DNA from: Mobula hypostoma
Taxonomy: Eukaryota
DNA: 64,000 nt
Direction of reading: 5' to 3'
Assembly (NCBI RefSeq): GCF_963921235.1
Contig: NC_086109.1
Coordinates: 11,470,001 to 11,534,000, forward strand
Part shown: positions 1,097 through 64,000 of the stretch, piece after piece
How positions within the stretch are numbered: position 1 is the first letter of the stretch
How the letters are laid out: every line of letters begins with the position of its first letter
Program-made: the position numbers and the translations under genes
Notes under the pieces: model-generated
Told to the model about the DNA's origin: nothing
Seen by the model: only the letters and a program-made list of their open reading frames with translations
Database searches by the model: none

Positions 1097-4000
1097 CTAA
1101 AAAATAAGATAAATGAGATTGAGGCTTTGTACAATTGACAGACCAAGGAGAAGTTCAAGCCAAGTTTAAGCCTGCCATTCAACCATACACATGTAGACCA
1201 CCGAACAAAACAAAGATTTCTCCGGACCGAGGTGTACACGCAGTACATATCACTCACACGCAACACATGAAGCGATATCACCACAAATAAATGAACAAAT
1301 GATAAGGTCCAACACATAATGGATCGAACCAGAGGGAGGATTCAATCTTGAATGCTGAGAGCTGCCTCACAAGAACAAGGGGTGATCTCTTGTACCAAGT
1401 TGTCATGGTTTCTTCAATAGGACCGCACAAACTGACGTTCACCTACAATATTGGATACCCCAACTGCACCTAGGTGGTCCAGAGGTTGAAGGTTTTTGAG
1501 TCTGGGTCAAGGACTGGAGGTCAGAGGTTGGATGCTCGTTTGGCGGTGCCCCATGCCAATGCACTTAAAGAGGGGATGAGTCGGGAGGGGAAGAGTGGTG
1601 GGCTTTGTGATAGACTGGGCTGTGTCCACTTTCTGCAGTCCCCTCCATCCCTTGGTGTTTCCATAGCAGTCAGGATAATGTCCACTGTGCATCTATAGAC
1701 GTTTCTCAAAATCTTTGGTGACATGCAGAACCTACACGAGTTTCTGAGGAAGTAGAGGCATGTTGTATCTTCTTTGTGATGTTACTTACCCAGGACAGAT
1801 CTTCTGGTAGGTTAACGCCAAGGAATTTTAAACCACTGACCCTATCCACCTCTATTCTCCTAATGAGGACTGGTTCATGGAACATAGGACATAGAACAGC
1901 ACAGGAACAGGCCTTTTGGTGCACAATGCTGTGCTGAAATAACTAAATTAGTAATCAAAAGGCTAACTGAACTAATCCCTTCTGCCTACACATTGTTGAT
2001 ATCCTTCCTGTTCCTCACATTTATGTGCCCATCTAAAGGTCTCCTAAAGGACCCCAATGTGTCTGCGTCTTCCCCCACTCCCCCAGGCAACACATTCTAG
2101 GCACCCATCACTCTCTGTGGTAAAAAACTTGCCGCTCACATCTCCTTTGAAATTACTGCCCTCATCTGAAATGCTTGCCCTTCGGTATTGGACATTTCGA
2201 CCCTGAGGAAAAGATACTGTCTCCCCCATCTATGCCTCTCATAATATTATAAACCTCTATCAGATCTCCCCTCAACCTCTGCTGCTCCAGAGAAAACAGC
2301 TCAAGTTTGTCTAATCTCTTGTTGTAGCACATGCCATCTAATCAAAGCAGTATTCTGGTAGAACTCTTCTGCACCCACTCCGAAGCCTTGTCGCACTTCC
2401 TTTAATGGGGTGGCCAGAAATGGATGCAATATTGCAGATGTAGCCTAATTAGAGTTTTACAAAGCTGCAACACAACTTCCTGACTTTTGAAGTCAACGTC
2501 ACAACTAACAAAGGCAAGCATGCCATATGACTTCTTAACCACGCTATCAACCTGTGTAGCCGTTTTCAGGGAGCTGTGAATTTGGATCCCAAGATTCTTC
2601 TTCTCCTCAACACTGTTAAGCGTCTTACCCTTCGCAGTGTACTGCCTCTTAAGACAGAGGAACAGAATGAGAGCATTTGGCCCATCAAGTCTGCTCCACC
2701 ATTCCATCATGGCTGATTTATTATCCCACTCCATCCCATCTTCTTGCTTTTTCTCTGTAACATTTGAAGCCCTGACTAAAGAAAAACCTATCAAGCTTTA
2801 GATATACCTACCTGAGCATTAAGTGTACTCAGTGACTTGGCCTCCACAGTCACATGAGGCAATGAATTCCGCAAATTCACCACCCTCTGGCTAAAAAAAC
2901 TTCTTCCTCATCTCTGTTCTAAATGTTCGTCCCTCTATTCTGAGGCCATGCCCTCTGGTCTTGGACTCAACCACTCATCCTCTCCAGATCTACTCTATCT
3001 AGCCCTTTCAATATTTGATAGGTTTCAATGAGAATCCCCCTTCATTCTTCTAAATTCTGAGTAAAGACCCAGAGCCATCAAATGCTCTATATACAGTATG
3101 TTAACCCTTCATTCTGGAATCATTTTTATGAACCTCCTCTGGACCCTCTCCAAAGCCAACACATTTTTTCTCAGATAAGGGGCCCAAATTGCTTATAAAC
3201 CTCTGTATGTTCCAACCAAAGCATTACATTTTTGCTTTTACATTGTAATCCTCTTGAAAGGAATGCTAACATTGTATTTGCCTTCTAAGTCCTTTTGAGC
3301 ATCTGGTTTTTTGAAATTTCTCCCCATTTAGAAATTTAGAAATAGTCTCCCCATTTAGAAATAGAATTTGCCTTTATTCCTTGAACTTAAGTTCATGACT
3401 ATACACTTCCCTAAATATCCATATACTCTGTCACTCCTTTACCCATTCTCCTGATTTTCCTTCTGCCTCTCTCCCTTCTTAAAGAGTGGATTCACATTTG
3501 TAATTTTCCAGTTCTCCAGAACTATTCCAGGATCTAGTGATTCTTAAAAGATCATTACTAATGCTTATACAATCTCTTCAGCCACCTCCTTCAGAACCCT
3601 GGGGTATATTCCATCTGGTTCAAGTGATTTATCTACCTTCAAACCTTTCAGCTTTCCAAGCACCTTTTGCTTGATAACTGCAACTACACTCACTTTTGCC
3701 CCTGACCCTCTCGAATTTCTGACCACAATTTGTTTTCCACAGTTACTTTGTTCCCCATTACTACCTCTACCATAACAGCATCATTTTCCAGAAGTCTAAT
3801 ATTCACTCTTGCCTTTCTTTCACTCTTTATATATCTGAAAAAGCTTGGTATCCTCTTTTATATTATTGGCTAGCTTTCCTTCATGTTTCATCTTTTCTCT
3901 CCTTATGGCTTCTTAGTTGCCTTCTGATTGTTTTAAAAGGTTCCAATCCTCTAACTTCCCACTAACTTTTGCTGTATTATATGTTCTCCATTTTCTACTC

Positions 4001-7000
4001 ACGCTGCCTTGGACTTCCCCTGTCAGTCATGATTGCCTGATCCTCCCTTTAGAATACTTCTTCAATGTTGGAATGCATCTATTCTGTGCCCTCTGAATTG
4101 CCCCCAGAAACTCCAGTCAGTGCCATTCTTCTGATATCCCTGCTGCTGTCCTCTTCCAGTAAAATTTGACCAGGTCCTCTCTCATACCTCTGTAATTCCT
4201 TTTACTCAACTGAAATACTAATACATCTAACTTTATTTTCTCTGTCTCAAATTGCAGGATGAATTCTATCATATTATGATCACTGCCTTCCAAGGGTTCC
4301 TTTACCTTTAGCTGCCTAATCAAATCTAGTTCATGACACAGCTTCCAATCCTGAATTGTGTTTCCCCTAGTGGGGTCAATGACAAGCTACTCAAAAAATC
4401 AACAAATTCCCTCTCTTAGAACCCAACATCAACCTGATTTTTCCAATCAATCAGCATATTGAAATCCTCCATGACTATCATAAGATTGCCATTTGAACTT
4501 GAGATTTCTATCTCCCATTGTAAATTGTATCCCACATCCTGCCCAATGTTCAGAAGCCTGAATATAACTTCTATCAGGGTCTTTATACCCTGCAGTTTCT
4601 TTTAAGGGACTCTTAGATATGGACATGGAGCTTAGAAAAATAGAGGGCTATGTGGTAGGGAAATTGTAGGCAGTTTCTAGAGTAGGTTACATGGTCAGGA
4701 CATCATTGTGGGCCGAAGTGCCTGTAATGTGCAGTGGATTTCTATGTTTCTATGTTAATTCTACCCTTAAGGATTCTACATCTTTCAATCATATGTCACT
4801 TCTTTCTAAGGATTTGATTTCATTTCTTTTTTTACCAACAGAACCACCCCACCCCTCTGACTACCTTCCTTTCCTTTCAATATAATGTGTATCTTTGGAT
4901 GTTAAGCTCCAACTATGATCGCCTTTCCGCCATGACTCAGAGATGCCCACACCATCATACCAACCAATCTCTAATTACACTTTGAGTTTTCTCACCTTAT
5001 TCTGTATGCTGCGTGCATTCAAATACAACACCTTTGTGTAACACATGTATCTAGAGATTCTTAAAAGATCATTACTAATGACCTTCAATTATGGGTTCAA
5101 CTAAGGGTCCGGTATTCATTACCCTTTTCTCTTTTGTTCCCGTTTTACACTTCAACACATCACAGTAACTTCAATGTTGCCCCTATCATCTGTCTGTTCT
5201 TCCTTAAGTCTCACTACACATTACATCTACCTGTATACCAACTGTCCAATCCTCAACCCTATCACTCCAGTTCACATTCCTACTGGCAAGCGAGTTTAAA
5301 TCCTTCCCAACAGTTGTAGCAAACATACCCACATGGATATTAGTCTCCCTTGAGTTCAGATGAAACCATTCCTTTTTGTACAGGTTATACCGTTCCCTAG
5401 AAAAGATCCCGCTGATCCAACAAATCTGAAATCCTGCCTCCTGCACCACTTCCTCAGCCACTCATTCATCTGCCAAATCTTGCTATTCTTACCCTCACAG
5501 GCGTGTGGCGCAGGCAGCAATCTAGAGATTACCACCCTGGGGTCATGCTTTTCACCTGTCTACCTAACTCTCTATATTCTCTCTTCAGGACCTCCTCCCA
5601 TTTCCTCACTATGTCATTGGTACTAATATGTACCACAACTTCTGGCTGCTCACCCTTCTCATTTAGAATATTGTGGATCTGATCCGAGACATCCCTGACC
5701 CTGGCACTGGGAGGCACAATCCATCTGGGTGTCTTTTTTATGTCTGCGGAACCTCCTGTGTGCTCCTCTGACTGTGGAATTCCCTGTAACTACTACACTC
5801 CTCTCCTTTACATTTGACCAACAAGGTGCAACACTTCACAATTGTCCGGGTTAAACTCCATCTGCCATTTGTCCATTCATATCTGCAACTGGAAGTACTC
5901 ATAGACTTTTGGCTTCTTCCTGCTGCAGCTGATAATCAGCTCTTTGGTTTCCTGAGGTTGAGTGAGAGATTGTTGCCCTGGCACCATTCAACCAGATTTT
6001 CAGTCACCCTTCTATAAGCCAATTCGTCATCACTTTTGATCCGGCCAACAACCAGTTGTGAGGTTTGTAAGCTTATAAATGGTAGCAGAGCCATACTTAG
6101 CCAAGCTGTCATAAATATAAAGTGAGTAGAGCAGGGAATAAGCATCCTCAGACAAGGGGAAATCTACAAGAGCCAATCAGCCTTCCACCAACTCGTAGGT
6201 CTTCGGGATGTGGGAAGCAACCGGAGCACATCAGGTGAAGGCAAGGAAGACTCTACACAGAAAGCAGCAGAGATCAGGAGTAGCCCCAGGCTGGTGGAGC
6301 TGTGAGTCCACAACCGTCCGAGCTGCCCCATTGTGCTGCTCCCAACGCCTGATGTCCTGTGGCGTAACTGTGATGGTGAGCTGAGACAGCAATCTTAGTC
6401 AGCAATCTTTCCATGCCATATTAATCTCTGATACTATGATATCCCCAACTGACATATTATTTTCCTCTAACCTTTATGTTAATCCAATTAAATGAAATGT
6501 ATGATGTCAATTAAAGACACTTGTATTACAGCAGAATTATCAAACTGTGATCTTAATCCGTCAATAGTTATTAATTTGAAGATGACAGTTGAAATCTCAC
6601 CTTTTGTTGTCCTTAGAATTTTCTGGTGTTTCTGGTGTGAGATGTTAAAACAAACACGTTAAACCAATTGATAATTAATTACAGCACAAAATAACTTTAA
6701 TCTTTGTCAACCTATAGGCTGGCATTGTGGTGGAGCAGCAGAACATTCAGATCTATTTACTGCATGTGCCGTGCATCGAAACAGACAGTGAAATGCATCG
6801 TTTTCATTAACAAGCAGCACCCTGCAGGATGTGCTGAGAGCCAGCCCACAAGTGTTGCCACACATTCTGGCTTCAATACATGACACCCATAATGTTCAGC
6901 AGAACAACACAGGACACAACATGCAAACAAGCAGCACATAAAGCAAGTCAGAAACGCACAACATCAACAGTAATATTATTTTGTGCTGGAGCAGGTGTGA

Positions 7001-10000
7001 AACCCTGAATCGCTTATTATTTCTGCTTCTTAGCTCCTTAAGTCAACTTATCTAGATCAGGAAGCAGAGAGTGATACAACACGGAAACAGATCCTTCAGC
7101 ATGCAGTCTGGTCCTATTTAATTCTCCCTCTCTTTTCCATCATCCCTTCCAAATTCTTACAAGGGGAATTTTACAACAGCCAGTTAACCTTCCACCTACC
7201 CCTAAGGCTTTGGGATGCAGGAGGAAACCGGACCAATTGAAAGAAATAAGGCGAAGGCAAGGAAAGCTCCACACAGAAAGCACCAGAAATCAGGATTAAA
7301 TCCAGGCTGATGGAGCTGTGAGTTCACAGCTGACGAGTTGCACCATTGTGCTGCTCCCAACTCATGAAGTTCATTGAACATAGACCATCAAACAGTACAG
7401 CACAGTACAGGCCCTTCAGCCACGAAGCGGCCAACATAATCTCTGACCCTTCCATCCCTGGTCATTCTCGCATCTCTCCTCTCCCATCAGGCAGAAGATG
7501 TAACAGGTTCTGAGCATGTACTACCAGGCTCAAGGACAGTTTTTATTCTGCTATTATCAGACCCTTGAGCAGACCTCCTGTACACTAAATGATGAACACT
7601 TGATCTCTCAATCTACCTCATCGTGGCCCTTGTAATTTGTCATGATTGCATTTTCTTTGTGACTAATACTATGTTCTGTTTTCTTTTACTGCCTTGATGT
7701 GCTTATGTTTGGAATGATCTGCCTGGATGGTGCATAAACTATGTTTTTCACTGTCTCTCGGCACACATGACAATAATCAACCAATACCAATACCGATAAT
7801 AAACCAATATCAATCTCAAGAGTCTATATGCAAGTGAAAGAATCAGTATGGAATTTCATAAGCAAAGATCAATAAGAAGACAGAAAAGATTCTGCAGATG
7901 CTGGAAATAGTTAGTAATGCACACAAAATGGTGGAGGATCTCAGCAGATCCCTCTATGGAGGGAAATAAACAGTTCATGTTTCATGCTAACGCCCTTCAC
8001 CAGTCCCAATGAAGCAACTTGGCTGAAAAAGTTGACACTTTATTCCTGTCCTCAGCTGCTGCCTGACCTGCTGAGTTCCTTCAGCATTTTGGGTGTGAAG
8101 ATGAGGAAGAAGATAGAATTCAACCAAAAAGTGGTGAGCAGTCTGGACACAAAATAGGGAAAACCGAGCAATATGAGGAGAAGGAAGATGGGTAGAAATA
8201 GAATGGAGGAAGATATAAGACAGTGAGACAATAGGAACACAATTACACTATTTGGCCTGTCAAGTCTTCTCCACCATGCTATCACGATTATTACCCTTCC
8301 CAACCCCATACTCCTGCTTTCTCCCCACAACCTTTGACAACCAAGAACCTCCACTTTAAATATACCCAGTGATTTGGTCTCCACAGTCATCCGAGACAAA
8401 GTATTGCAACTAGCTAAAGAAACTCCTCCTCATCTCTGTTCCAAAGTGGCATCCCTCTACGGAGTAGAAAGTCTGTAACGACTGAAGATTTGCATGTTCG
8501 TAAGCACTAAAGCACAGAAGTTTTAGGTTGATTCGTACCTTCAGAAATCTCCAGCATTTTAATCTGCACAATCTCAAAGTTAACCTTGTTTGTTGCTCCA
8601 CACCAGTACTCTCCTTTATCTCCTTCGTTGGTATGCTTTATGGTGACAGCAAATTCAGTGGAAGTGTTTATGATGATTGCTGGGTTTCTGCTGCTGTATT
8701 CAGAGCTGGCTATCACACTGCACCTATTTACAGAGGTTACTTTACACAAGAATTTCTCATATGATTTAAATCGGTGGTCATAGTGGCAGTGTAGGCTGGT
8801 GGCAGTTTGCATCACACCCTTCACCGTGGTATTGTCTGCTGTCCATGAACCTGCTGGTAAATGAGAAAAGGAAGAAATGAGGGGTCTAACGTAGTGGGAA
8901 TCGTGCTGACAGAACCTTCAGTGCTACAGTTAGCTGAGGCTGTGTGGGAAGACTACTGACCATGAATGGGGGGGACCCAAGTAGAACAGGCCTTGCCAAG
9001 TCTGAGAGATAATGCAAGAAGTTAAGAAGGCTAAAAGAAAGCATGAAATTGCTCCAGCAGACAAGCTGAAGGAGAATTGTAAGGGAATCTACAGGCATGC
9101 TATGAGCAAAAGAATTGCAAGGGACAGAATTGGTCCTCTGGAAGACCAGCATGTTAATCCATGTGTGGAGCCAAAACAGATGGGGGAGATTTTAAATGCA
9201 TTCTTTGCACCTGTATTTTCTTGGGAGACAGATACAGAGTTTATAGAAGCGAGGTAAAGCAGTATCAACTTCATAGACCCTGTACAGATTACAGAGGAGG
9301 AGGTGTTTGCTACTCTTTGGCAAATCAGGGTGGATATTTCTCCACAGCCTGACTAAGTGTTCCCTCGGACCCCGTGGGAGGGAAATGCAGAAATTGCCAG
9401 GGCCCCAGCAGAGATATTTAAAACATCTTTAGTGACAGGAGAGTTACTGTAGGATTGAGGGACAGCCAATGTTGTTTCACTGTTTAAAAAAGGCTTTAAA
9501 CAGAAACCAGGAGATTATAGGCTGGTGTGCCTGACGCCAGTTGTGGGAAAGTTATTGGAAGGTATTCTCAGAGACCAGATATATAAGTAATTATATTGAT
9601 ATGGACTGGTTAATGATAGTCAACATGGCTTAGTGTGTGGTAGATCATGTCTAACCAATCTTACGGAATTTTTTGAGGAAGATAACAGGAAAGTGGATGA
9701 AGACAATCAGTGTATGTTATCTATGTGGACTTTAGTAAGGCATTTGTTAAGGTCCTGCATGGGAAGCTGGTGAAGAAGGTCCATCGCTTGGCATACTGGG
9801 ACCGATCTGGAATGCTAGGGCACTGAGGAGTGTGGTAGACAAAGTGATCTGGGAATACAAGTTCATGATTCATTGAAAGTGGTGTCACAGTTAGATAGGA
9901 CTGTAAAGAAAGCTTTTGACACTTTGGCCTTCAGAAATCAAAGTATTGAGTCCCCAACATGGGATGTTATGTTGAAGTTGTATAAGATTTTGGTGAGGCC

Positions 10001-13000
10001 TAATTTGGAGTATAGTGTGCAGTTCTGGTCATCTACCTACAGGAAAATTGTAAACAAGGTTGAGAGAGTGCAGAGAAAATTCACAAGGATGTTGCTGGCT
10101 CTGGAGGACCTGAGTTATAAGGGAAGATTGAATAGGTTCGCATTGTATTTTTTAAGAATGTAGAAGATTGAGAGGAGCTTTGATAAGGGTACACAATATT
10201 AGGTGTGGTATGGATGGGGTAAATGCAAGCAAGCTTCCTCCACTGAGATTGGGTGGGTCTACAACCATAGGTTAAAGGTGAAAGGTGAGAACTTTAAGGG
10301 GATCATGAGGGAATCTTCTTCACTCAGAGGGTCATGAGAGTGTGGAATGAGCTGCCAGCACAAGTAGTTCATGTGATTTCAATATTTAAGAGAAGTTTGA
10401 ATAGGTACATGGATAGTAGGGATATGGAGGGCTATGGTCCCGGTGCAGGTTGATGGAAGTAGGCAGGTTAAATGGTTTTGTCATCATCTAGATGGAGCAA
10501 AGGACCTGTTTCTGTGCTGTACTTCTCTATGACTCTATGATGTACAGTCTTGGGCACATGTAAAAAAATTCTGTAAAGCGAAGATATTAAAAATAAATGA
10601 AATGAAAATATTATAAATATCAAAATAATTACAAAACGTGAAATTAAATCAACATTTGGTGTGAGCACACATTGCCTTTAAAGCTGCATCAGTTCTCTTA
10701 GAGGCACTGTCATGCAACTTTATAAGGAAATCGATTGGTGGGTTCTTCCAAGGATCTTGGAGATCTTGCTACAGTTCTTCTGAAAGACTTTGGCTGTCTC
10801 AATTGTTTCTGTCTCTCCAGGTAATCCCAGACAGCCTCAAGATCATGGCTCTTTGGAGGCCATACCATCAGTTGCAGAATTCCTTATTCTTATCTTTTGC
10901 TGAAGGTAGTTCTTTATGACCTTGGCTGTGTGTTTGGGGTCATTCACGTACTGCAGAATGAAGTTGGGACTGATCAGACACCTCCCTGATGGTATTGCGT
11001 GATGGATGAGAATTTGCTTGTGCTTCTCAACATTGAAGATTCCAGTAATTCTGATCAGACCATCAAATCTATTTGCAGAAATGTAGCTGCAATCCTGCAG
11101 GGAACCCCTGCCATGCCTCACTGTTGGCTGCAAACACTCATCCATGTAGCATTCTCTAGCTCTTCTACAGAGAAACTGCCTCCTGTCTGAGTCAAAAGTT
11201 TCAAATTTTGATCATCAGTCCAGAGCACTTGCTGCCATTGTTCAGCACCCCAGTCTATGAGTTTCTATGTCCATGGGCGACTCTCTTGGCTTTGTTTCCA
11301 AAGTGGAGGAGTAGCTTTTTGGCAGCAAATCTTCCATGAAGACCACCTGATAATATTACCCTGGACTATAGAGGTGTGTACTTGGGTTCCAGTTGTTTCT
11401 GTAAGTTTAGAGCTGATAGCAGTGCTGGACTTTGTCCAGTTTTGAATGGATGTCAGTTTGATGTATCTCACATCTGCTGCACTCAGCTTCCCTAGCTGAC
11501 CACTGCATTTCTGGTCCTCAGCCTTGCTTGTTTCTTTGTGCATCTTCAGAAGACTTGGACAACGCATCTTGAAACTTCCATCTGCCATGAACTTTCTGCT
11601 TGGGAGAAACCTTAGCGATGGAAGATATTACACTGTGTCTTGTTGCTATGCTCACTCTTGCCATGGTGTAAGAATTGATGATTTGAAGCTTAAACTGTCA
11701 CATCACCTTTTAGTTTGCCTGTCCTTTGCCCAGTTTGATTCCTGCCACACCCGTTGCTGTTTCAGTTAATCTGTTTAGTTCATTCAACTTATTATATCAT
11801 TGATCATTAGCACCTGTTTGTCATCTTTGTTTAATCATGCACTGGACTGTATGCCTACAAGGTAATCAAGTTTTATTTGTAAAGTGGCCCAATACTTAAT
11901 ATGTTACTTTCTTTAACAGTTCCAAAAATTTCCCTGAAACATCTAAATTTTTTGGGAAAATGAATGTTGGGAAATCTAAACTTTGTTCTTTTCTACTGAC
12001 ACACTAATGCAGAAGGCAAACATTAAACATCTAAAACAAAGTTTATATAAAAAATCTAGGATGCCAAAGGCTTTTGTACTGTACTGTATTGCCAAGACAT
12101 AGGCCCTTTGGCCATTGTGTTCACTCAGTGGGTTGAAGACACTTAGCTTTCCCATGAAGTGCTCTCTTGGAAGAGGGTAGGAGAATGGGGTTGAGAGGGA
12201 AAATAAATCAGCCAGGATAGAATGGTGTAGCAGGTTTGATGGGCCAAATGTTCTAATTTTGCTCCTGTGTCTGATAGTCTTATGGAAGACCGGAGTCAGA
12301 CAGTGTCTCCACTCTCTCTTCCCTTGTTTGCATGCTGTATACAACCCTGTGCTAAATCCATCAGGAAGGATGAGAGCAGGAAGAGGGGTGACATTGCCAG
12401 GCAGTTCGGACACACATTTCAAAATCTCCCTGTAACTGGACAAAGCTGCAATCATCTGCTTAGATCCCCAGTCAGTTCGCAGATTGATCAGCATCTGTAA
12501 CTGCTCTGATTTGGCATCCTGGGTTAGATTGAACCACAGGAAGAGCGAGGTCATGCTCTTCGGTAACTGGCACAACCTATCCAATGACCCCTTCGCTGTC
12601 AGGCTGGACTACCTGAGCTGCTGAGTTCCTTCAGCATATTGTGTTCATTGTAACCAATTTACTAATTTCTGTATCAACAAACCTTCCTCTTCTCTCTCAT
12701 TCCTGATGCAGGGTCTGAATCTGACTTGCACCTTTCACATCTACAGTTGCTAAGTGGCCTCCTCAGTTCTTCCCATGTTTCATGTCGTTTCAGTGTCTGG
12801 AATCTGTTGTCTCTTCTGTCTTCTCTGATAACACTTTGGGAAGTGAAGGTTATATCATGATCAATGCATTCATTATGGGACGACAGTCCAGCTGGTACCC
12901 TGACTTAAGCCTAAGCCTTACCTGCGGTAACCTTCAGCATTACAATGTCTGATACGTCAATATATCTTCCGTTTATACGTCCACACCAGTATATCCCTGA

Positions 13001-14733
13001 ATCACTCTCCATAAGTTGTCTTGTGGTTACAACAATAGATCCTGTGTGTATTCTGATTGATATTCTTGGATGGTAACTGTATTTCTCTGTATCCACTACT
13101 GTATTGCATTTCCTTTGATAGTTTGTTTTACACAAAACTATGGTTCCCCGTTTCTCTGCAGGTGAACATCGCACTGTGACCGTTTCTCCCACTCCTGCTC
13201 GTACCACCATTGTGTGATGTCGTGTCAACGATTCTGTCAGTAAAATTAAAGTAAAAAAATTAATTTTTATTGATTGATTTTGTTTTATTTACAGTAACAG
13301 GCCCTACTGGCCCAATGAGCCCGCGCAGCCCAATTGTACACGTGATCAATTGACCTACGAACTTGTACTTCTTTAGAACGTGGAATGAAACCAGAGCACA
13401 TGGAGGAAACCTACGTGATCACAAGGACGATGTACAAATGCTTTACAGACAGCATTGGCAATTGAACCTGGATCGCTAGTGCTGTAATAGTGATACATAG
13501 AAGATAGAATAGTACAGCACAGTACAGTAGAGACAGCGGCGGAATTGAACCTGGATCGCTAGCATTGTAGCAGCATTACATAGATCATAGAACACTACAG
13601 CACCGTACAGATCCTTTGGCCCATGATGTTGAGCCGACCTTTTAATCTACTATCAGATCAATCTAACCCTATCATCTTGTACACCTCTATCATGTTACAT
13701 CTCATCCTCCTTCACTCTAAAACAAAGAGCCCTAGCTTGCTCCACCTATCTTCATAGGACATGTTCTCTAATCTAGGCAGACCTCCACTAACCATTAAGC
13801 TACCAAGATGATATTTTATAGAATCTCAATGAAGTATTTCCATAAAAACCTTACATGAAACTTAATCTTCGCTCACTTCTCTGGATCAATGGCTAAATAT
13901 TCTTACAGCATAAAATGAAGCCATTTCAGCCCTTTGGGCCAATGCAGTTCCATTTCCCACCAGTCCTTACAAAGAGATGCTATGGACTAGATGGACCAAA
14001 TAGTCTCCCACCATACTGAACCCATTCCATTACCTCATTTTCTGACATGATAGCCCTTGGTTCTTAACAGACTTGATAGTCATTGCGGCATTGCCTATTG
14101 TGGAAGTTGGCTTTTGGGTTTTCTACACACCTCTGCACTTCAAAAGTACTTTGTTGTTTGTGAAGTGTGCTGTGAAATTTTTATAGACCTGTAGATCATG
14201 CACCATAGAAACAAGTGCTTCAGCTCACTGAGTCTGTGCAGACCATAAAACACTCACTTCCATGAATCCCTTTCTCTTCTCCCCACATTCCCATCAACAC
14301 CCCTTAGATACTCACCGACAATTTACCATGGACAATTATCTTACCAAGCTGTACATCTTTGGGATGTGGGACGGTGGGGTAATTCGAACACCCGGAGGAA
14401 ACCCACACAGGGAGACATAGCACGCCAAAGCAATGGAGGACAGATTGGGCCAAAAGCAAACCCTCTGTGCTGCACGTACTCCATAGAACTTTTTTGCTAA
14501 ATCCTCCCCCACAACTTTGTTTCAGCTCACTATTCCTCGTACTAAAAAGTAAAATTGATTGTCACCTTTCCTGATCCCTGTTGCTTATTCTCAGCGGTAG
14601 AGTTTCATCACGTGTCTGGTTAGCATTAAACAATTTTTAAGGTTATATGTAACTAGATGCTATAGTTCAATATATGTGAAAAGAAAGTCTTACTTGAGAT
14701 GACAGAGAGCAATAGCAGAGCAGCAAACAGCAT
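978..14733 (-). CDS. Gene A: CD300/pIgR-like (MDIR-like) two-Ig-V-domain type I membrane receptor; 3' end incomplete
   Basis: Five phase-compatible exons with GT/AG sites: leader 14694-14733, V1 12922-13233, V2 8539-8850, stalk 6601-6631, TM 978-1096. Spliced product MLFAALLLLSVISKSLTRHH...YWCG...VTAGSWTADNTT...YWCG...EISEETPENSKDNKSSGPQIWYILLPLLLGLLVLLLIVLLIKKRRRPQKIVTPA. Both V domains carry the CD300/pIgR C-x7-C extra disulfide and the DxGxYWCG motif. Confidence 0.88.
1500..1925 (-). mobile_element. Rex1/Babar-like LINE RT remnant
   Basis: VDRVSGLKFLGVNLPEDLSW resembles the Rex1 FKFLGV...DLSW motif. Confidence 0.55.
1945..5800 (-). mobile_element. Cluster of degenerate CR1 LINE fragments (gene A intron 4)
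   Basis: ORF 2402..2794 (LGIQIHSSLK...LIRLHLQYCIHFW), 4117..4323 (LEGSDHNMIEF) and 5529..5717 (ORF1-like VVVHISTNDI). Confidence 0.75.
5800..6140 (-). mobile_element. Rex1/Babar-like RT remnant (paralogue at about 54700-55010)
   Basis: VVGRIKSDDELAYRRVTENLVEWCQGNNLSLN matches the Rex1 VVGLI..DE.AYR.EV..L..WC..NNL.LN pattern. Confidence 0.7.
6601..6631 (-). CDS. Gene A 31-nt stalk exon (ETPENSKDNK-S)
   Basis: ccag|AA ACA CCA GAA AAT TCT AAG GAC AAC AAA AG|gtgag. Phase 1 to 2 exactly bridges V2 (phase 1) and TM (phase 2); conserved in gene B. Confidence 0.8.
8539..8850 (-). CDS. Gene A membrane-proximal Ig V domain exon (V2)
   Basis: 312 nt, phase 1-1, cagcag|GT...GAA G|gtacg; HCHY...KFLCKVTSVNRC...DKGEYWCG; ORF track 8507..8824. 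Confidence 0.92.
8995..10535 (+). mobile_element. Degenerate CR1 ORF2 and 3' end in gene A intron 2
   Basis: ORFs 9012..9257 and 9873..10163 (LVRPNLEYSVQFWS...VERVQRKFTRM); orthologous copy at about 57885-59445. Confidence 0.8.
10545..12086 (-). mobile_element. Tc1-family DNA transposon, degenerate, about 1.54 kb
   Basis: TA|CAGT ends (left TIR partly deleted; right end cttttgtactgtactg|ta); HTH remnant KLSAADVRYIKL...STAISSKL and DDE remnant ILQYVNDPKHTAK. Confidence 0.85.
12922..13233 (-). CDS. Gene A membrane-distal Ig V domain exon (V1)
   Basis: 312 nt, phase 1-1, ttttactgacag|AA...GCA G|gtaagg; VRC...LCKTNYQRKC...DSGIYWCG; ORF track 12911..13228. Confidence 0.92.
14694..14733 (-). CDS. 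Gene A leader (signal peptide) exon MLFAALLLLSVIS
   Basis: ATG, hydrophobic core, TCA A|gtaag phase-1 donor; conserved at 63480-63519. Confidence 0.85.
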
Positions 14734-14969: not shown

Positions 14970-15918
14970 TGTTATGTACCCCGTAACTGGGTTGCCAAAC
15001 CAGCAGAAATGGACCACTTAGTTGGAGTCTGGATTACTGGAACTAAGAAAGTTTTATTAAAGAAATAAGTAACACAGTACTCTAAATGTAAGGATATAAA
15101 TGCAACAGGTTAGCAATGATAAAACACACATGTACACAGAAGTAGGATAATAGGATCAATCAAGCTCTATCGCAGTCTAGGGGTAAAATGATCAGTCTCA
15201 AGTGACATAGAGTTCAGTCCAGTTTAGTTCAGTTCGCAGTGATCANNNNNNNNNNNNNNNNNNNNNNNNNNNNNNNNNNNNNNNNNNNNNNNNNNNNNNN
15301 NNNNNNNNNNNNNNNNNNNNNNNNNNNNNNNNNNNNNNNNNNNNNNNNNNNNNNNNNNNNNNNNNNNNNNNNNNNNNNNNNNNNNNNAACAGACCTTTGA
15401 TATTCCTCGCAGTTAGCTTTCGGGCGAGCCTTTTGTAATGTCTTCTGTGGTCACCGACTGTGACCCCTCCGCTCCAGATACGACTGTTCTTCCGCGGTGA
15501 ACCCGGCACCCAGGCAAGGGCGGACACACACACCAGGTTCCCGCCGATCGTACCTTCCACCCTGTGCGTCTATGGTCGGTCCCGCGACCAGACCTCCAAA
15601 ACTTCCACCAACTTGTGGGGGCGGGGGGGGCGGGGAGGCACAACGCACTTCCAGGGTCTCGTTATCTCGTGGTGTCGTGGTGTGTCGCTTGCCTTAGCGA
15701 ACCTGTTCCTTTTATCCCCCTGCTGGGGTATCGCCTGTCCATCAAACTTCAAACAGTTCAGGTTCAAAGCAACCGGTCTGATAATACTCGAAACTGTGTC
15801 TATTTTCGTTAATCTCTCTCGTCTCTCTCTTATTAGCATTTTGAATGTTTCCCCCATTTGCCTCTCTCTTATCTCTCTTATCGGCATCAATCTTCTGATA
15901 ACTTGGTCTTTTGTCACA
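14970..15918 (-). mobile_element. LTR (TG...CA) insertion with 4-bp TSD AAGT, containing an assembly gap
   Basis: gaatataagt|TGTTA...TCACA|aagtacacacag versus the empty paralogous site gaatataagtacacacag at about 63746; AATAAA on the minus strand at 15053-15058. Confidence 0.85.
15246..15387. other. Assembly gap (142 N)
   Basis: Run of n characters. Confidence 1.
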
Positions 15919-34052: not shown

Positions 34053-34184
34053 TCAATACACTACAGTTTCTGAGTAATGTTGTGTTCTGGCATTTTCAGG
34101 AGAATGTTGAACAGGAAGATTGATGTGCATGTTTTCCATGTGATCTCTGCATTGCTTCACACTGGCATACACCACAGGCGTTTC
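34053..34184 (-). CDS. Gene B terminal cytoplasmic exon with ITIM VVYASV and truncated second ITIM
   Basis: Branch point CTAAC, pyrimidine tract and catacag|GAA (phase 0); encodes ETPVVYASVKQCRDHMENMHINLPVQHSPENARTQHYSETVVY*. Confidence 0.75.
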   Translation of the reverse strand, partial: ETPVVYASVKQCRDHMENMHINLPVQHSPENARTQHYSETVVY

Positions 34185-37100: not shown

Positions 37101-40100
37101 GGAGACGAGGCAAATGGTCTGAATTTGTTAAAGGCGTCTCAGAGAGGAGAGGAATTTTTAAGCCGTCATCTTTCTACTTAACTGAACTGAACTTCTCAGT
37201 CTTGTCTCCTACCTGAGTATAATGATGGCAGTAATGAGCAGCAGGAAGAGAGCTGACAAGGCAACTGCAAGCAGAACATGCCATTGGGATGGTCTTGGCT
37301 TCCTGCAGAATATGACAAAGACATTGACAGATCTAGTCTAACGGGCATGTTCAAACTTTCTCCTTCTCCAGTATTGCCCTCTATTTTTTTTTGATCTGTT
37401 AAGTAGAAATATGATGTAGATTTGAACACATGTGCCTCTCACTCAATATCAGCAAGATCAAAGATATTATTATTGACCAGTAGAGGAAAACTGGAAGTCC
37501 ATGAACTAGTCCTCGTCAAGGGTGTTACAGATTTCTTGTTACAATTTCAAAGGATCTGTGCCATTGCAAAGAAAGTGTGGCAGCGCCTTTACTTTCTTAG
37601 ATGTTTGTGAAGGTTTGCATGTCATCTAAAACTTTACAAGGACGATTCTGGGAATGGAAGTGTTATCATACAAGGAATGTTTGATAGCTTTGGGTCTGTA
37701 GTAGCTGGAATTTAGAAGGATTTGGGGGATCTTATTGAAACCTTTTGTATGTTGAAAGGCCTAGACAGAGTAGATGCGGAAAGGATGTTTCCCATAGTGG
37801 GGAAGTCTCGGACAAGAGGGGAATCAATTTAAAACAGAGGCTGCATGTGACAGGTGAGACCAGGTGATCACCTTTTACCTCTTCCTCTTAGCACTTCCCA
37901 GACTGTAACTTAATTCCCCCTGTCTCTCACCACATCTGATTTCTCCTTCCCATTTCCCCCACCTTCTTATCCTGGCTTCTTCCTCTTTCCTTTCCAAACC
38001 TGAGGATGGTTCTTGATCAATAAAGTCAACTGTATATCCCCCCATCCTCCAAAGATTCTGTCTGGCCTGCTGTGTTCCTGCAGCATTTTGTGTGTGTTGC
38101 TGCAAATAATCCTGTTTGTACTTGAGGAAACACAAAGGAATTAGACAATCCAACTATAAATTTGTTCCTGCTACGATCCCTTGTCAATTACATAATTCTA
38201 CCAAAGGAAAAGGATTGTTTCTGTTAAGAGCTCGGTATAAATGGAGTCAAGTAATCCTGGATTCACGCCATTAGGGTTCAGAAAATGCTCTCTGATCAAT
38301 AGTTTTATCACCAACTAGCAATGACATAACTGTATTACTAGGTCGAGGTATCTTCTAAGCTGATGGCATTAAAATCAATTTCTCCAACTTCATGTTGGAC
38401 ACTTACATGACATGAAATTTGTTGTTTTGTGGCAGGAGTGCAGTGAAAAGACATAAAATTACTCTAAATTACAAAAATTAATAAATAACATGATCGCAGC
38501 AAAGCCAAATTCTAGCAAATTCTCCCCCCCTTTACCCGTTCTTGATTTTTCCACTCTAGTTTCTAATATTTTTTCCTCACCTGCCTATCACCTTACACTA
38601 CGTGTCCTCCTCCCACACTTTCTTCCATGATCCACACTCCTATTTGATCAGGTTCCTTCTTCTCCAGCCCTTTCCCTTTTCTAATTATCACCTCCCAGCT
38701 TCTTACTTCATCCCACACTTCCCTCCAACAACCTGGCATCACCTATCGCATTCTAGCTTGTCCCTGCTCCACTTCACCACTTCCTTATTCTCACATCTTC
38801 CCCCTTCCTTTCCAGTCCTGATGAAGAGTCTTGGCTCAAAAGGTTGACCCTTTATTTATTTCCTTAGATTCTGCCTGACCAGCTTCTTCCTCCAGCATTT
38901 TGTGTGTGTTTCACTGTATTACTGGTAAAATTGCATTTCACCATCTTTGCCATTCACCATGAGTACTTTTCAGAATACTGCATCTCTGAGGTAAATGTGA
39001 GCTGTCCCGTGAGCGACCGGTGAAGTGTTGGAAACTGATTTTGGCTAATTATTTAGATGGGCATGTACAAAGCCTAGTACATATGTTTACAGATGACATT
39101 ACAACAGGTAATATCATAGATAGTGAAGATGGTTATCAAGAACAACAATTATTGGCTAGACTAGTGGGAATGGCAAATGTAGTTTAGTACAGATAAGCTG
39201 TGGCATTTCGGGAACACAAATGAAGGCAGGACACTCATAGTGAAAGATGGGGCTCTGGGGAATGTTGTAGCTGAGAGGGTCATAGGAGTATAAGTAGATG
39301 ATTCATTGAAAGCGTTGTCACGTGTTGGTGTGGTGTTGGAGAAGCGGTCTGGCATGATGTCCTTCATCAGTCATGGCATTAATATAAGTTTCTGAATGTT
39401 ATATTGCATTAAACAAGATTTTAGTAACGGAGTTTTCTGTACAGCTTTAGTCACCATGCTGCAGGAAAGATGCCTCTAAGCGGAAAATAGTAGAGGACAG
39501 ATAAGATTTACAAGCATGTTGCTTGGACTTGGGTAACTGAGCTACAGAGATATTTGTCAGGCTAGGATTTACTACCTTGGAGCATAGGAGAATGAAGGGT
39601 GACCTTATGGAGGTGTATAAAATCATGAGGGATATCAACAAGGTAAATGCACACAGTTTTTTTCCTGCCAGAGTTGGGGAATAGAGGGCACAGGAAAGAG
39701 TTGAGTGATTACACAGGAAGATTTTTGTTGAGGTGAGTTAAGATTCTACTTTTTCGCTCAAAGTGTGGTCAATGTATGGAAGAGCTGTCAGAGGAAGCGG
39801 TTGTTGAAAATGTAATTCAAGTAGTTATTGAGTACTTTGGTTGAATGTTTACCATGGAAAAGGATATTGAAGACCAGGGAATCAGTGCTGAGTGTATAAA
39901 TATGCTAGGTATTTAGATGTCAAGGAGGAAGAAGTGTCGGGCCTCCTACTGAGTATTAAGGTGGAAGTTCCCAAGGCCTGATGAGATTTACCCCAGGTTA
40001 TTGAGGGAGGCAAGAGAGGAATTGCAGGGTCTTTGATCAGTAGCTTTCAGAATCAGAATGATGATCACCGCATGTGTCATGACATTTGTTAACTTAGCAG

Positions 40101-43100: not shown

Positions 43101-46100
43101 TCATATGCCAGTCTATCTCGGGGTTTTCTGGCTCTCTGAGAACTCCTTATTTCAGCTTCAGCTTCTGCAGCTTCAGACACTCCTCGTTAATGAGGGGTTG
43201 CCCCCACCCCTCCCAGTCTGTCACTTGTATCTTCTAGAGACTCAGTTCCCCCTGCCCCCTGAATGAACTCAGCTGTCTTCAGTTTAAGCAGGCGCTACTG
43301 GGCATCTTCAACCACCACTGGTGCTAATCGGCAAGATCTCCCTTGGAAAAGGGTGTCCTCTGTCACTCTAGCTCCTCCTTCAGGACTTAACATGACATGC
43401 TTAGACTGGGTGTACCACACAGTTCCCTTTATATGCTGATAGTTCTGCTTCAAAGGAACTTGCACCTTCTCAAAAGCAGCCCTGAACACTGGGTGAATGG
43501 ACAGGCTTTTCAAAAAATGCTTTCCATTTCTCCCCTTGCATGCTCCCACGAGCCCTCTAAAAAATGGGAGTATTTGATCCCACAAGAATGGAAGTTTCAC
43601 CTTTTACAACTGGATCCCAGTAGACTAATACTAGCATATCAATAGTCTCAGTTACTCCAACATCAGCTTCTAAAAACTCCAGTTTCAATGACAAGTAACC
43701 ATTGCCAGTGTATACTAACAGTTTAGCAACTCTATTCCCGACTCCCCCATGGTCAATGCACCAATCAGAACTGTGCTGGAACTCTCTGACTAGCCTGTGT
43801 TGGAACAGCTACTGGAATCCTCCAGAGGCTCAATATCATCTGCTTGACTGGCCTCCCTCCACCACCCCAAACATTCCCTTTATTTTATTTTTTATATATT
43901 TTTCCTGCATTGTGAGCTCACTGTGTCTGAAGTGGGTACTTCCCTCGTCATGTACAACACAAACCTGTCCAGCCTTCCTCAACGTCTCATGCATTGAAGC
44001 GTTTCTCGGGGAGAAAATAGACAAAAATAAGTAGAAACAGATAATCCTACAGTAGGTCCACCACAAGTCACATTGGGTGGGACTACAGCTAGAGGTCATG
44101 GGTTTAATGTGAAAGGTGAAACGTTTAAGGAGATATACTGTCTTCATGTTGGTTCTTTTTCTGCAGCTTCCCCAGCGGTCATCTGGGTCAATAGCTGTGA
44201 AATCACTGGTCACTTATATTATGGAGCTAGAGCTGTCCTGGGGATACTGAGATCTATCACACTGGTTCCACAGTAAAATTAACTCAATGCTGACAAAATC
44301 CCATTCAGGTTGTAATTATCCCTTACAATATGGGACACTTGACATCTCTTGACGCTCTGAAATACATGGAAACATCCAGTTCTGGATCCTTAATCACCCC
44401 TGACATTAACTGTTATTCCTCTGGTGGATGTACCTTCTGTGGGTCAGATCCTGATCTGTTGGAATTCCTTCTCCACAGCTCTCTGGCCCTCTCTTTCATT
44501 CTCACTCTAAAGGCTTGTTAAATCCCACCAATTGTTGAGTTTTTGATCACATGTACCTTACGTCTCTACATGTGACTCAATGACAGATGTCAGACAATGC
44601 TGCTGCGCATGGCCTTTTGCCTTATCAATCAACTTGAAGCAGCTGTGGAAATGAAATTTGTTGTTGTTTTATTACAATGGATTGCTCAATAAACTTGATA
44701 AAATCCATCTGTTTTATTCACTCTGGAATATTTTAACTAACATAATTTGGAATAGTTGTGCTGGGTTTTAAGCAGTATTTCATACATTAAAAGCAAAATA
44801 TTGCATCATTTTGAGAGCAGCTTATGAGTCCAATCAAAACACACACAAAATGCTGGAGGAACTCAGCAGGTCAGGCAGTATCTATGGAGAGGAATACAGA
44901 CTCGACATGTCTGGCCGACACCCTTCATTGGTCTCAACCTGAAATATTGAATCTTTATTCCTTTCCGTAGATGTTGCCTGACCTACTGAGTTGCTCCAGC
45001 ATTTTCTGTGTGTTTCTCTGCATTTCCAGCACCTGAAGAATCTCGTGTTCAAGTCAAAATATTTTTTATTGCTTGGGTGAATTTTGAATCTTTAGAAGCA
45101 GCTGCAATTGTTGCACTGATTCACCTGTGAATTTACAACAGGCAGTAGATGCTGGAAGCTGGAGCAATAAGCTATTTACTGGAGGCACACAACAGGTTGA
45201 GCTGCATTTGTGGTGTGGAAAGATGCCGTCGACATTTCAGGTTGAGACCCTGCACAAGGACCGATCTGTCTGTGTTGTGGGTTCTGCTTCATATCAGCCT
45301 GTCTAGAAAAATAGAAAATCCAATGTTAGGAATTGAGAGGTGAGAAGAAGCAGCAAAGATGATGATATTCCTCTCCAGAAAACAGCAGTGATAATTTTTT
45401 TATGTGGGTGCAGGAATCGTTCAGTAGGGACTCTACCGTGGTGGGTGTTGGTGCTGTGAGTGTTGAATAGGGTCATATCATTCCGTATTTGCCTGGGGGA
45501 AACTGTCAATGTCCATGGCTGTAGTGTAATGGTATAGTGGGTGTTGTCTGAGCTGGAAGTAGGGTGGAGGGGTGGAGGATTGTGATTGATTGCTTCAGTA
45601 GTGGAAAGTGAGGTGCCACCAGGAATGAAAGATTACCTTTATTGGATGCATGTATATAAAAACATTAAAAAATTACAGCGAAATATGTGATTTGCAGCAA
45701 TGAACAAGACAGTCCAAGGATTGTGCTGCGGTCACCCCACAAGTGTCATCATGAGTCTGGAGCCAACATAGCATTCACACTCCTCATTAAAACTAACACG
45801 TGGGAGGAAGCAGTTATGTTTTGTAACTCTAAAGCATAAAAATATTTGAAAGGGAACACGGAGATTTTTGCTTTAAGGGAGGCTTTCAGTCATGACCTGG
45901 TGGACTGAAAATAATAACTTGGGATAAGGAGATGGCTGATGAACTAACTGAGTATTTTACATCAATCTTCACTGTGGAAGTCACTAGCAGTATGCCTGAT
46001 GTTGTAGTGTGTGAAGGAAGAGAAATGGGTGCAGTTCATATTACAAGAGAGGTGTTCAAAAAGCTGAAGGACCTAAAGCTACATAAGGCATAGAAAACGT

Positions 46101-63519: not shown

Positions 63520-64000
63520 TGTTCCAGTGATGGTTCTCAGTTTCCAGTGACTGTGTCTACAATATACACTTCCTCCTCTTTTTTGAAAGGATCTGTCATG
63601 GATTGCACCATTTCCTCTTAAATTAGCAAATACCTTTGCAATGTGACACAGAAAAAGGGACATTAACAGATGTCCTTTTTCACATGTTAACGTATATATT
63701 GTTAAAAGTTTTCAGTTTGGGGAGACAGGAAGATGACTCTTAACTGAATATAAGTACACACAGAGGCTAGAAGATCTGCTAAAAAAACAGCATTACCTTC
63801 ATCCTATACAAAATGCTGTAAGAACTCAGCAGACCTGGCAGCAGCCATGGAAAAGAGTCAAAAGTTGATGTTTCAGGCGCTTCATCCGGACTCAAGATTA
63901 AGGATCTCTTTTCTATGGATGCTGCCTGGCCTGCTGAGTTCCTCCAACATTTTGTGTGAGTTGCTTGGATTTCCAGCATCTGCATGTTTTCTCTTGTTTG

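Follow-up and report, generated by a model that had tools for sequence, protein, structure and literature searches.

Merohomogenization, in which paired leukocyte receptors of opposing function are partially homogenised, has been described for the KLRC, KLRA and PIR families (Fossum et al. 2011, PMC3210942), and a further precedent for an ectodomain-restricted pattern of homogenisation is given in PMC12447643. The locus described here lies in a 64,000-nucleotide window of the Mobula hypostoma genome (NC_086109.1, positions 11,470,001 to 11,534,000). Like the merohomogenization cases, it has an activating and an inhibitory gene next to each other, conversion after speciation appears to keep its ligand-binding exons similar within each species while leaving out the transmembrane (TM) and tail exons, and ectodomains sort by species while tails sort by type. 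It differs from those cases in coming from a ray, in having an ectodomain of two V-set domains, in that a truncated LINE forms the outer limit of homology, and in that V1 of M. hypostoma would have escaped the last conversion; the pairing of the two receptors is a prediction from sequence. The pattern itself has long been known for mammalian paired immune receptors, and what is seen in the ray is real but ordinary, with no new mechanism.

Among cartilaginous fish, the MDIRs, associated with the 2006 work of Cannon and colleagues, are said to form a multigene family with Ig domains resembling those of CD300, pIgR and TREM, with charged TM segments or ITIM tails and a modular combination of domains. 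The two genes described below resemble skate MDIRs in these features, being CD300/pIgR-like with a charged TM or an ITIM tail. To our knowledge, a genomic boundary, conversion layers and a LINE context have not been described for MDIRs. The clearnose skate MDIRs (Cannon et al. 2006) are cited in PMC3031540.

The two genes, A (window positions 1-16.2 kb) and B (53.8-64 kb), are collinear paralogues, both on the minus strand and spaced 48 kb apart. Their V2 exons are 93% identical and their stalks agree at 11/12 positions, while their TM exons cannot be aligned. Pfam recognises a V-set domain in V1 of gene B (E = 1.6e-10) and gives E-values of 1e-5 to 3e-4, below the Pfam cut-off, for the three other domains; the translations carry the D-x-G-x-Y-W-C-G motif as DSGIYWCG and DKGEYWCG. 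A search returned 566 homologues, for which the automatic RefSeq names include pIgR-like and CMRF35-like molecule 8. Both genes are thus named here, on domain content, as predicted type I V-set receptors of the pIgR/CD300 (CMRF35)-like kind, which are characterised by an ITIM tail or by a charged residue in the TM.

The spliced model of gene A equals a RefSeq protein (P0163 / XP_062922503) across 233 residues, and its V2 is present in RNA contigs. Its 31-bp stalk exon (6601-6631, minus strand, phase 1 to 2) has AG/GT sites and ends in phase 2. The TM exon previously proposed for this gene, QIWYILLPLLLGLL, was located at 978-1096 on the minus strand; it is uncharged and starts in phase 2, and the ITIM tail exons lie outside the window. 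With this uncharged TM and the three ITIM-like motifs of P0163 (VTYSAV, TIYSNM and VEYSAL), gene A is predicted to encode an inhibitory receptor.

To gene B, the preliminary description gave the TM exon QWHVLLAVALSALF, but that exon sits past the last exon of B. The actual TM exon is NYELIIQKFWTLTCWILLRALF... (52632-52739, minus strand, phase 2 to 2), 1.03 kb past the breakpoint, and its membrane span contains an arginine. Identity is 78% with the Hypanus orthologue (P0001) and 92% with that of M. birostris (P0162). The exon also occurs with 0 differences at positions 52-158 of a spliced contig (X13, record 9), flanked on both sides by other sequence, this single low-depth contig from a run presumed to be RNA being the whole of its RNA support. 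Upstream, the 31-bp stalk exon of B (55494-55524, minus strand) likewise ends in phase 2. The last coding exon (45176-45302, minus strand), in a frame that agrees with P0162, P0158 and P0161, encodes a short tail with no signalling motif. The open reading frame is intact at 310 residues, and all exons of A and B have AG/GT sites. Taken together, the TM arginine and short tail indicate that B is a putative activating-type receptor, not an ITIM receptor. The correction of the gene B model matters for annotation of the cluster, as its protein is missing among the RefSeq M. hypostoma proteins that the search returned. Because of this, and because a cysteine now stands in place of the conserved TM arginine, a new arginine having appeared four residues further along, gene B may be decaying.

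Leader, V1, V2 and the 31-bp stalk exon are common to A and B, while TM and tail are unrelated, as first described. By blastn, A 5076-5745 matches B 53770-54440 at 86.5% identity and A 5565-11327 matches B 54461-60231 at 93.6%. Left of A 5076 and B 53770, similarity searches from either point gave no further A/B homology, in agreement with the reported disappearance of homology there. The edge of homology lies inside a LINE in intron 4, between stalk and TM. Rightward from it, windowed identity rises in steps, from 83.1% (5076-5425) through 92.9% (5426-5650) to 96.5% (5651-9376), with a maximum-likelihood change point at 5690 (support interval 5429-5708); the earlier estimate of about 80% followed by about 95% from 5660 was therefore roughly right. 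A high-identity tract (A 5651-12954, B 54522-60732; 92-99% in windows), apparently the most recently homogenised, covers stalk and V2 and ends at the V1 exon. The V1 exon itself is 70.5% identical between the genes, and identity past it is 81-85%, as in an old non-repeat layer at 13202-14212. That layer makes it unnecessary to read the lower identity at the edge as mere family-level likeness of CR1 copies, as had been done, since 83% matches its 81-85%. The boundary was also considered as only a late LINE insertion into A; this was rejected because A 1-2100 has no collinear match in B, so that homology does not resume past the LINE of A.

The boundary coincides with the junction of ORF1 and ORF2 in a CR1-like LINE, which continues in A to near full length. 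The leftmost B-homologous stretch of A (5076-5745, minus strand) is the 5' part of this element, with an esterase-like ORF1 whose minus-strand frames read HISTNDI...RVVISRLLP...LYKKEWFHLN; besides the copy in B, a similarity search of the window found no further copy of it. The remainder in A (2023-5029, minus strand) has no counterpart in B. It comprises the start of ORF2, the endonuclease (4408-4975, with an insert of about 155 bp at 4601-4755) and the reverse transcriptase (RT; about 2023-3690), and gives blastn and tblastx matches to LINE copies at 46091-51154, in which Pfam detects RVT_1 (E = 3e-14) and Exo_endo_phos (E = 2.7e-4). In intron 4 of gene B, the 5' fragment (B1; 53770-54440, minus strand) abuts single-copy DNA at 53770. 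An ORF within it (54091-54330, minus strand) has a weak Lipase_GDSL_2 match (E = 0.0025, below the Pfam cut-off) and a protein-atlas lead of 0.87. The placing of the breakpoint within a LINE copy, probably a CR1-like one, therefore stands, with homology ending in LINE-derived DNA that has a weak ORF1 signal and, in A, ORF2, endonuclease and RT. An esterase ORF1 is reportedly tied to CR1 (Kapitonov and Jurka 2003). The repeat edge in B is also visible in read depth, which steps exactly at 53778/53779 from about 13-19 on the left to 1,200-98,000 on the right. The left flank (52740-53769) is single-copy DNA without LINE similarity, and the genome holds thousands of copies at least 90% like the repeat copy of B. 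At 5076-5425, A and B share 83% identity, less than the likeness of at least 90% that many of these genomic copies show to the repeat of B, which gives separate insertions some small probability.

In gene A, the edge of homology is marked by a 51-bp scar (5030-5080, minus strand) that interrupts the start of ORF2 (LKV / LYLNARS). The scar consists of 32 bp from the RT region of the same element (3532-3563, 31/32 identical), a 13-bp filler and an AAGGT repeat; B has in common only its first 5 bases (CATTA), followed by unique flank. This make-up suggests a repair-like origin, although the 32 bp at 5049-5080 could instead be a family feature of an internally deleted LINE subfamily. Compared with Alu- or LINE-mediated non-allelic homologous recombination, the locus is alike in that one end of the block lies in a LINE. 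It is unlike in that B offers no partner LINE, a hybrid element is missing and A contains a filler. In these respects the A/B junction resembles a non-homologous or microhomology-mediated joint.

The preliminary description had named misassembly as a possible source of the junction. At the B junction, short-read contigs of two species bridge position 53770, one of 1,535 bp with 0 differences from the same species and one of 1,673 bp with 60 differences (4%) from M. birostris, both reaching 160 bp into the repeat side. On the A side, the RefSeq model of gene A splices over the junction. An assembly error or haplotype switch, which a repeat-rich region and an N gap at 15246-15387 might bring to mind, is thus very hard to credit. 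The contigs date the junction to a time before the two Mobula species diverged, which is as far as the dating reaches.

Our preferred reading, to which we give a probability of about 0.75, is that the shared block has its edge in a truncated LINE, and that a copied segment subsequently underwent layered, ectodomain-restricted conversion (merohomogenization) between inhibitory A and activating B. Because retrotransposition cannot produce a LINE piece without a 3' end, the LINE copy in B would have arrived within the copied segment, with either the end of that segment or a later deletion falling inside the element. The block would then have been re-homogenised in layers, now seen as an outer layer of 81-86%, an intermediate one of about 93% and a stalk/V2 core of about 96.5%. 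Conversion of this kind would keep the putative ligand-binding exons of opposing receptors alike and their signalling exons unrelated, with the homology edge acting as the probable outer limit for conversion events. On this reading, the locus would provide a base-resolution case of where homogenisation stops, the end of homology deriving from a break in a LINE.

The mechanism first put forward was LINE-mediated non-allelic recombination. In its fuller form, each locus had its own independent CR1 copy, homologous recombination or conversion between these two fused the ectodomain to a foreign tail, and the 80-86% identity reflects only family-level likeness. A boundary in LINE sequence, an edge identity (83%) below that of the core and the abundance of closely similar genomic copies all speak for such an event. 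It lacks support because no second LINE exists at the far flank of B, where the single-copy DNA provides neither a partner nor a hybrid element. Moreover, the B fragment, having no 3' end, is not an independent insertion, the LINE has the same position and orientation in both genes, the 83% equals that of the non-repeat old layer at 13202-14212, and the A junction contains the 51-bp filler in place of a seamless crossover. We regard this explanation as quite improbable.

A different placing of the segment edge is raised by the structure of B itself. The local duplication reported at this junction is present, in that B1 is followed by a second partial ORF1 copy (B2; 54461-54617, minus strand) that aligns with A 5565-5745 apart from a gap of 25 bp, and the 96-97% tract runs rightward from B2. 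The two copies (54259-54440 and 54461-54617) share only 77.6% identity, which becomes about 91% when the gap is disregarded, and neither is closer to its neighbour than to A; a recent tandem duplication of 54259-54617 was for this reason rejected. Independent contigs break inside this repeat and do not confirm it. The true segment edge might then lie at about 5430-5700 in A and 54120-54540 in B, with the repeat formed by a non-homologous joint, where a LINE fragment already in place was overlapped by an arriving segment resembling A. The support interval of the change point (5429-5708) falls in this range, an overlap of 157-182 bp with a 20-bp spacer is found just there, and the mutual distance of B1 and B2 is in keeping with it. 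Such a joint, however, requires that a LINE fragment already resided at an equal place and in equal orientation, the differences in the overlap (8 versus 14 in 95 bp) are too few to tell the histories apart, and the right-hand part of the block has a still older layer of equal identity. This makes it an unlikely explanation. Under the preferred reading of a copied segment with layered conversion, the youngest tract stops at a heterology, the extra copy of 200 bp in B, which may well have caused that stop.

The same pattern is repeated in other cartilaginous fish. In Hypanus, 227 residues of leader, V1 and V2 are identical between activating and inhibitory forms, with different stalk exons; in M. 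birostris, the two forms differ by 1 residue; and in a white-shark model (P0090), two halves are identical at 139/141 residues up to the TM. In a V2 tree, Mobula forms a clade (support 99/97) in which grouping is not by tail type, the activating and inhibitory forms of M. birostris pair at 100/98, and those of Hypanus are equal. TM exons, by comparison, are orthologous between species. In the two rays Mobula and Hypanus, and likewise in a white shark, pair ectodomains thus cluster by species, and tails do not; the two histories, whose congruence would have spoken against module shuffling, are incongruent across species. The distal V1 of M. hypostoma is at 50% A/B identity, having apparently escaped the last conversion in this species but not in M. 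birostris. These comparisons would extend ectodomain-restricted homogenisation, so far mainly mammalian, to rays and probably to sharks, in which differing types of V domain are combined with one recurring set of two TM/tail modules.

About 8 kb past the last coding exon of B lies the orphan inhibitory-type TM exon mentioned above (the QWHVLL exon; 37213-37302, minus strand, phase 2 to 2), with intact AG/GT sites and 50% identity to the TM of white-shark P0090. It is followed by an orphan ITIM tail exon (34053-34184, minus strand) encoding VVYASV and then VVY and a stop. A tblastn search of the window with 157 homologues found no further V exons for these two. A query with the white-shark C-terminus, in search of a Mobula protein with this type of TM and tail, returned shark proteins only, which does not prove absence. 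Each of the TM exons of A, B and the orphan has an AG acceptor and a phase-2 start, and the stalk exons end in phase 2. A phase-2 stalk junction, as initially proposed, thus fits the three TM exons of the window; that modules are always joined there fails as a general rule, since the Hypanus forms differ already in the stalk exon.

Splice-competent inhibitory-type exons without ectodomain exons of their own thus stand behind the activating TM and tail of gene B, and RefSeq lists one Hypanus gene with both inhibitory (XP_059806113/4) and activating (XP_059806115/7) isoforms identical in leader, V1 and V2. In some ray genes, a single ectodomain might accordingly be followed by a stack of two tail cassettes compatible in phase, and such genes could yield activating and inhibitory products through mutually exclusive 3' exons, an idea we offer tentatively, with the odds well against it. 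If it were true, the homology boundary would mark the site of cassette stacking. Intron 4 of gene B also contains a degenerate second copy of its TM exon (52861-52992, minus strand), which is 41% identical to P0001, with 72.5% identity between 52901-52991 and 52647-52737.

The left end of the homology between the two neighbouring receptor genes, A 5076 and B 53770, is a real and well-delimited structure. Contigs from two species cross it in gene B: a 1,535-bp contig from a Mobula hypostoma DNA run spans 52400-53931 with 0 differences, and a 1,673-bp contig from a second species spans 52422-53930 with 60 differences (~4%). The four substitutions that the latter carries in the TM exon yield exactly the transmembrane (TM) segment of M. 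birostris XP_072134949, which identifies the second species as M. birostris or one very close to it. Given both contigs, misassembly of the junction is extremely improbable, and the boundary had formed before the two Mobula species diverged.

The window (43% G+C, with a single N gap at 15246-15387) contains four V-set Ig exons, all on the minus strand and divided between the two genes. Gene A comprises leader (14694-14733), V1 (12922-13233), V2 (8539-8853), stalk (6601-6631) and TM (978-1096) exons, with its tail exons outside the window. The corresponding minus-strand exons of gene B lie at 63480-63519, 60700-61011, 57430-57744, 55494-55524 and 52632-52739, followed by a last coding exon at 45176-45302. 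AG/GT sites flank every internal exon. Over its first 233 residues, the spliced gene A model is identical to RefSeq XP_062922503 (Mobula hypostoma); at that point the RefSeq model takes an acceptor 3 nt further on. Gene B has an intact reading frame for a 310-residue protein. A search that recovered the product of gene A and the genes of M. birostris yielded no M. hypostoma protein matching this one; in RefSeq, gene B may lack an annotation or be listed as non-coding.

The interval 5075-5800, where a preliminary description placed a duplication breakpoint in a CR1 copy, lies entirely within intron 4 of gene A, and its counterpart within intron 4 of gene B. Self-comparison found collinear blocks at A 5076-5745/B 53770-54440 (86.5%), A 5565-11327/B 54461-60231 (93.6%), A 12457-13671/B 60233-61458 (84%), A 13736-14969/B 62502-63755 (86%) and A 15919-16173/B 63752-64000 (91%, cut by the window end), and no collinear homology left of A 5076 or B 53770 with short words or at protein level. 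Windowed identity to B is 83.1% at A 5076-5425, 92.9% at 5426-5650, 96.5% at 5651-9376, 92.8% at 9377-11327 and 96.6% at 12457-12954. It is 70.5% in the V1 exon, 81-85% at 13202-14212 and 88-93% to the right of that layer. The contrast between 5076-5425 and 5651-9376 is strong (Fisher p = 4e-20), and the single best change point is A 5690 (support interval 5429-5708), so the earlier estimate of about 80% rising to about 95% near 5660 was about right.

A-only stretches occupy 11328-12456 (1,129 bp), with the high-identity tract resuming on either side, and 14970-15918 (~950 bp, containing the N gap); a B-only stretch at 61459-62501 (1,043 bp) contains a LINE RT piece. B intron 3 contains a short repeat of extremely high copy number at 56931-57127, where summed contig depth in the DNA run is ~1.6 million, against ~15 for unique DNA. 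The local duplication described in B is also present in the assembled sequence (54259-54440 and 54461-54617). Identity between its copies is 77.6%, or ~91% when a 25-bp gap is ignored, and neither is closer to the other than to A, which rejects a young tandem duplication. Contigs break inside this repeat and so give it no independent confirmation.

The LINE context described for the end of homology holds. In minus-strand orientation, the sequence that A and B share at the boundary corresponds to the C-terminal half of an ORF1 from a LINE, with HI(G/S)TN(A/D)I, RVVISRLLP and LYKKEWFHLN readable. A GDSL-lipase signal there is weak (Pfam E = 0.0025, below the cut-off; protein-atlas lead 0.87). 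An esterase ORF1 is a CR1 trait, and 'CR1-like' is a fair provisional label. In gene A the LINE extends leftward past the boundary, beginning with the ORF2 start (LKV-LYLNARS) and continuing through the endonuclease (4408-4975, with a 155-bp insert at 4601-4755) and RT to ~2023. For these ORF2 parts there are matches in other LINE copies of the window, which give RVT_1 at E = 3e-14 and Exo_endo_phos at E = 2.7e-4. B's LINE ends at 53770. Contig depth is 13-19 left of 53778 and 1,200-98,000 right of it, indicating that single-copy DNA and a high-copy repeat meet at the breakpoint. Retrotransposition of LINEs starts at the 3' end; as the B piece keeps the 5' part without the 3' part, it is a product of rearrangement.

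At base level, the minus strand of A reads TTGAAGGT, then a 51-bp insert, then the canonical ORF2 start. The insert consists of 32 bp identical at 31/32 positions to A's own RT region 3532-3563, 1.5 kb away, 13 bp of filler, and a second AAGGT. Gene B reads TTGAAGAT, then five bases common to A (CATTA), then unique flank. The templated filler and short flanking repeat of A sit exactly where A/B homology ends, a configuration suggestive of template switching or of error-prone repair of a break, and unlike a seamless homologous crossover. In A's RT region the stretch matching the 32 bp is integral to the RT reading frame. The 32 bp may instead come from a LINE subfamily with an internal deletion.

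The boundary, its LINE context, the identity layers, the gene models and the cross-species pattern are direct observations. They are best explained if B received its 5' LINE piece with a copied segment that terminated within A's LINE, and later conversions refreshed the core of the A/B block (probability about 0.75). At slightly better than even odds, the homology edge is also the left-hand limit of these conversions, and the youngest tract stalls at B's additional 200 bp. The LINE-mediated non-allelic recombination proposed earlier was not borne out, and LINE-to-LINE homologous recombination is an improbable origin for the junction, because B has no partner LINE. Scarcely likelier is a LINE fragment already resident in B, with the joint at ~5430-5700.

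The cross-species pattern supports the separation of ectodomain from TM/tail modules that the preliminary description had drawn. The same pair of tail modules recurs behind near-identical ectodomains. For example, activating and inhibitory Hypanus isoforms are 100% identical over L-V1-V2, their differences lying in the stalk, TM and tail exons. The inhibitory and activating genes of M. birostris are 1 residue apart, and the two halves of a white-shark read-through model are identical at 139/141 residues up to the TM. Ectodomains thus resemble each other by species across tail types, so that their history is incongruent with tail type and homogenisation is post-speciation. The Hypanus sabinus isoforms X1 to X4 (XP_059806113, XP_059806114, XP_059806115 and XP_059806117; P0160, P0166, P0001 and P0158) have consecutive accessions, indicating one RefSeq gene, with inhibitory isoforms of 348 aa and activating isoforms of 327 and 314 aa.

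The four Mobula sequences group as one clade in the V2 tree (support 99/97), with the M. birostris pair as sisters (100/98). V1 falls into two lineages, alpha (gene A of M. hypostoma and both M. birostris genes) and beta (gene B, Hypanus and Hemitrygon). The V1 of gene B (60700-61011) is 69-72% identical to Hypanus and Hemitrygon, whereas M. birostris activating genes with the orthologous TM exon carry an alpha-type V1 like that of gene A (84%). This difference implies whole-ectodomain replacement in one of the two Mobula lineages. The boundary belongs to an already known kind: ectodomain-restricted, post-speciation homogenisation matches the merohomogenization of Fossum et al. (PMC3210942), also reported for CD300A/CD300C (PMC12447643). 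The nearest relative described in cartilaginous fish is probably the skate MDIR family (PMC3031540).

The full-length RefSeq product of gene A contains VTYSAV, TIYSNM and VEYSAL, by which gene A is predicted to be inhibitory; gene B is predicted to be activating in type. V2-bearing RNA contigs contain all nine A-specific letters and thus derive from gene A, whose TM had been correctly assigned. The TM previously given to gene B (QWHVLLAVALSALF) was wrong, as its exon sits at 37213-37302, past B's last exon. Hypanus sabinus P0001 matches gene B in V1 (69%) and V2 (84%), in the TM exon at 52632-52739 (78%) and also in the 45.2-kb last exon (77%), and M. birostris P0162 matches the TM exon at 92%. 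A 485-nt contig, from a run guessed to be RNA, contains 52632-52738 at contig positions 52-158 with 0 differences; its upstream 51 nt are compatible with 19 nt of V2, the stalk (31 nt) and 1 further nt, and its downstream 327 nt with B's last exon.

Both stalk exons end in phase 2, and the A, B and orphan TM exons all start in phase 2. Within the window, phases therefore agree with the proposed phase-2 stalk junction, but 'always' is too strong, since the Hypanus forms are identical through V2 (227 residues) and differ from the stalk on. The orphan inhibitory-type TM exon (37213-37302) has intact AG/GT sites, and an orphan ITIM exon at 34053-34184, likewise downstream of B's last exon, encodes VVYASV, then VVY and a stop that cuts the distal motif. 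No V exon belonging to them was found nearby; they may be left over from a lost gene or serve gene B as an alternative 3' cassette.

In the M. hypostoma B TM (LTCW), cysteine replaces the arginine (motif xRW) conserved in M. birostris, Hypanus and Hemitrygon, and four residues on glycine is replaced by arginine (ILLRALF; M. birostris, LTRWILLGALF). The charged residue seems to have moved by one turn, or decay to have begun. At 52861-52992, 230 bp upstream of the real TM exon, there is a degenerate tandem copy of it, which the M. birostris contig also covers, and an unspliced RNA contig of low depth maps to 52944-53150.
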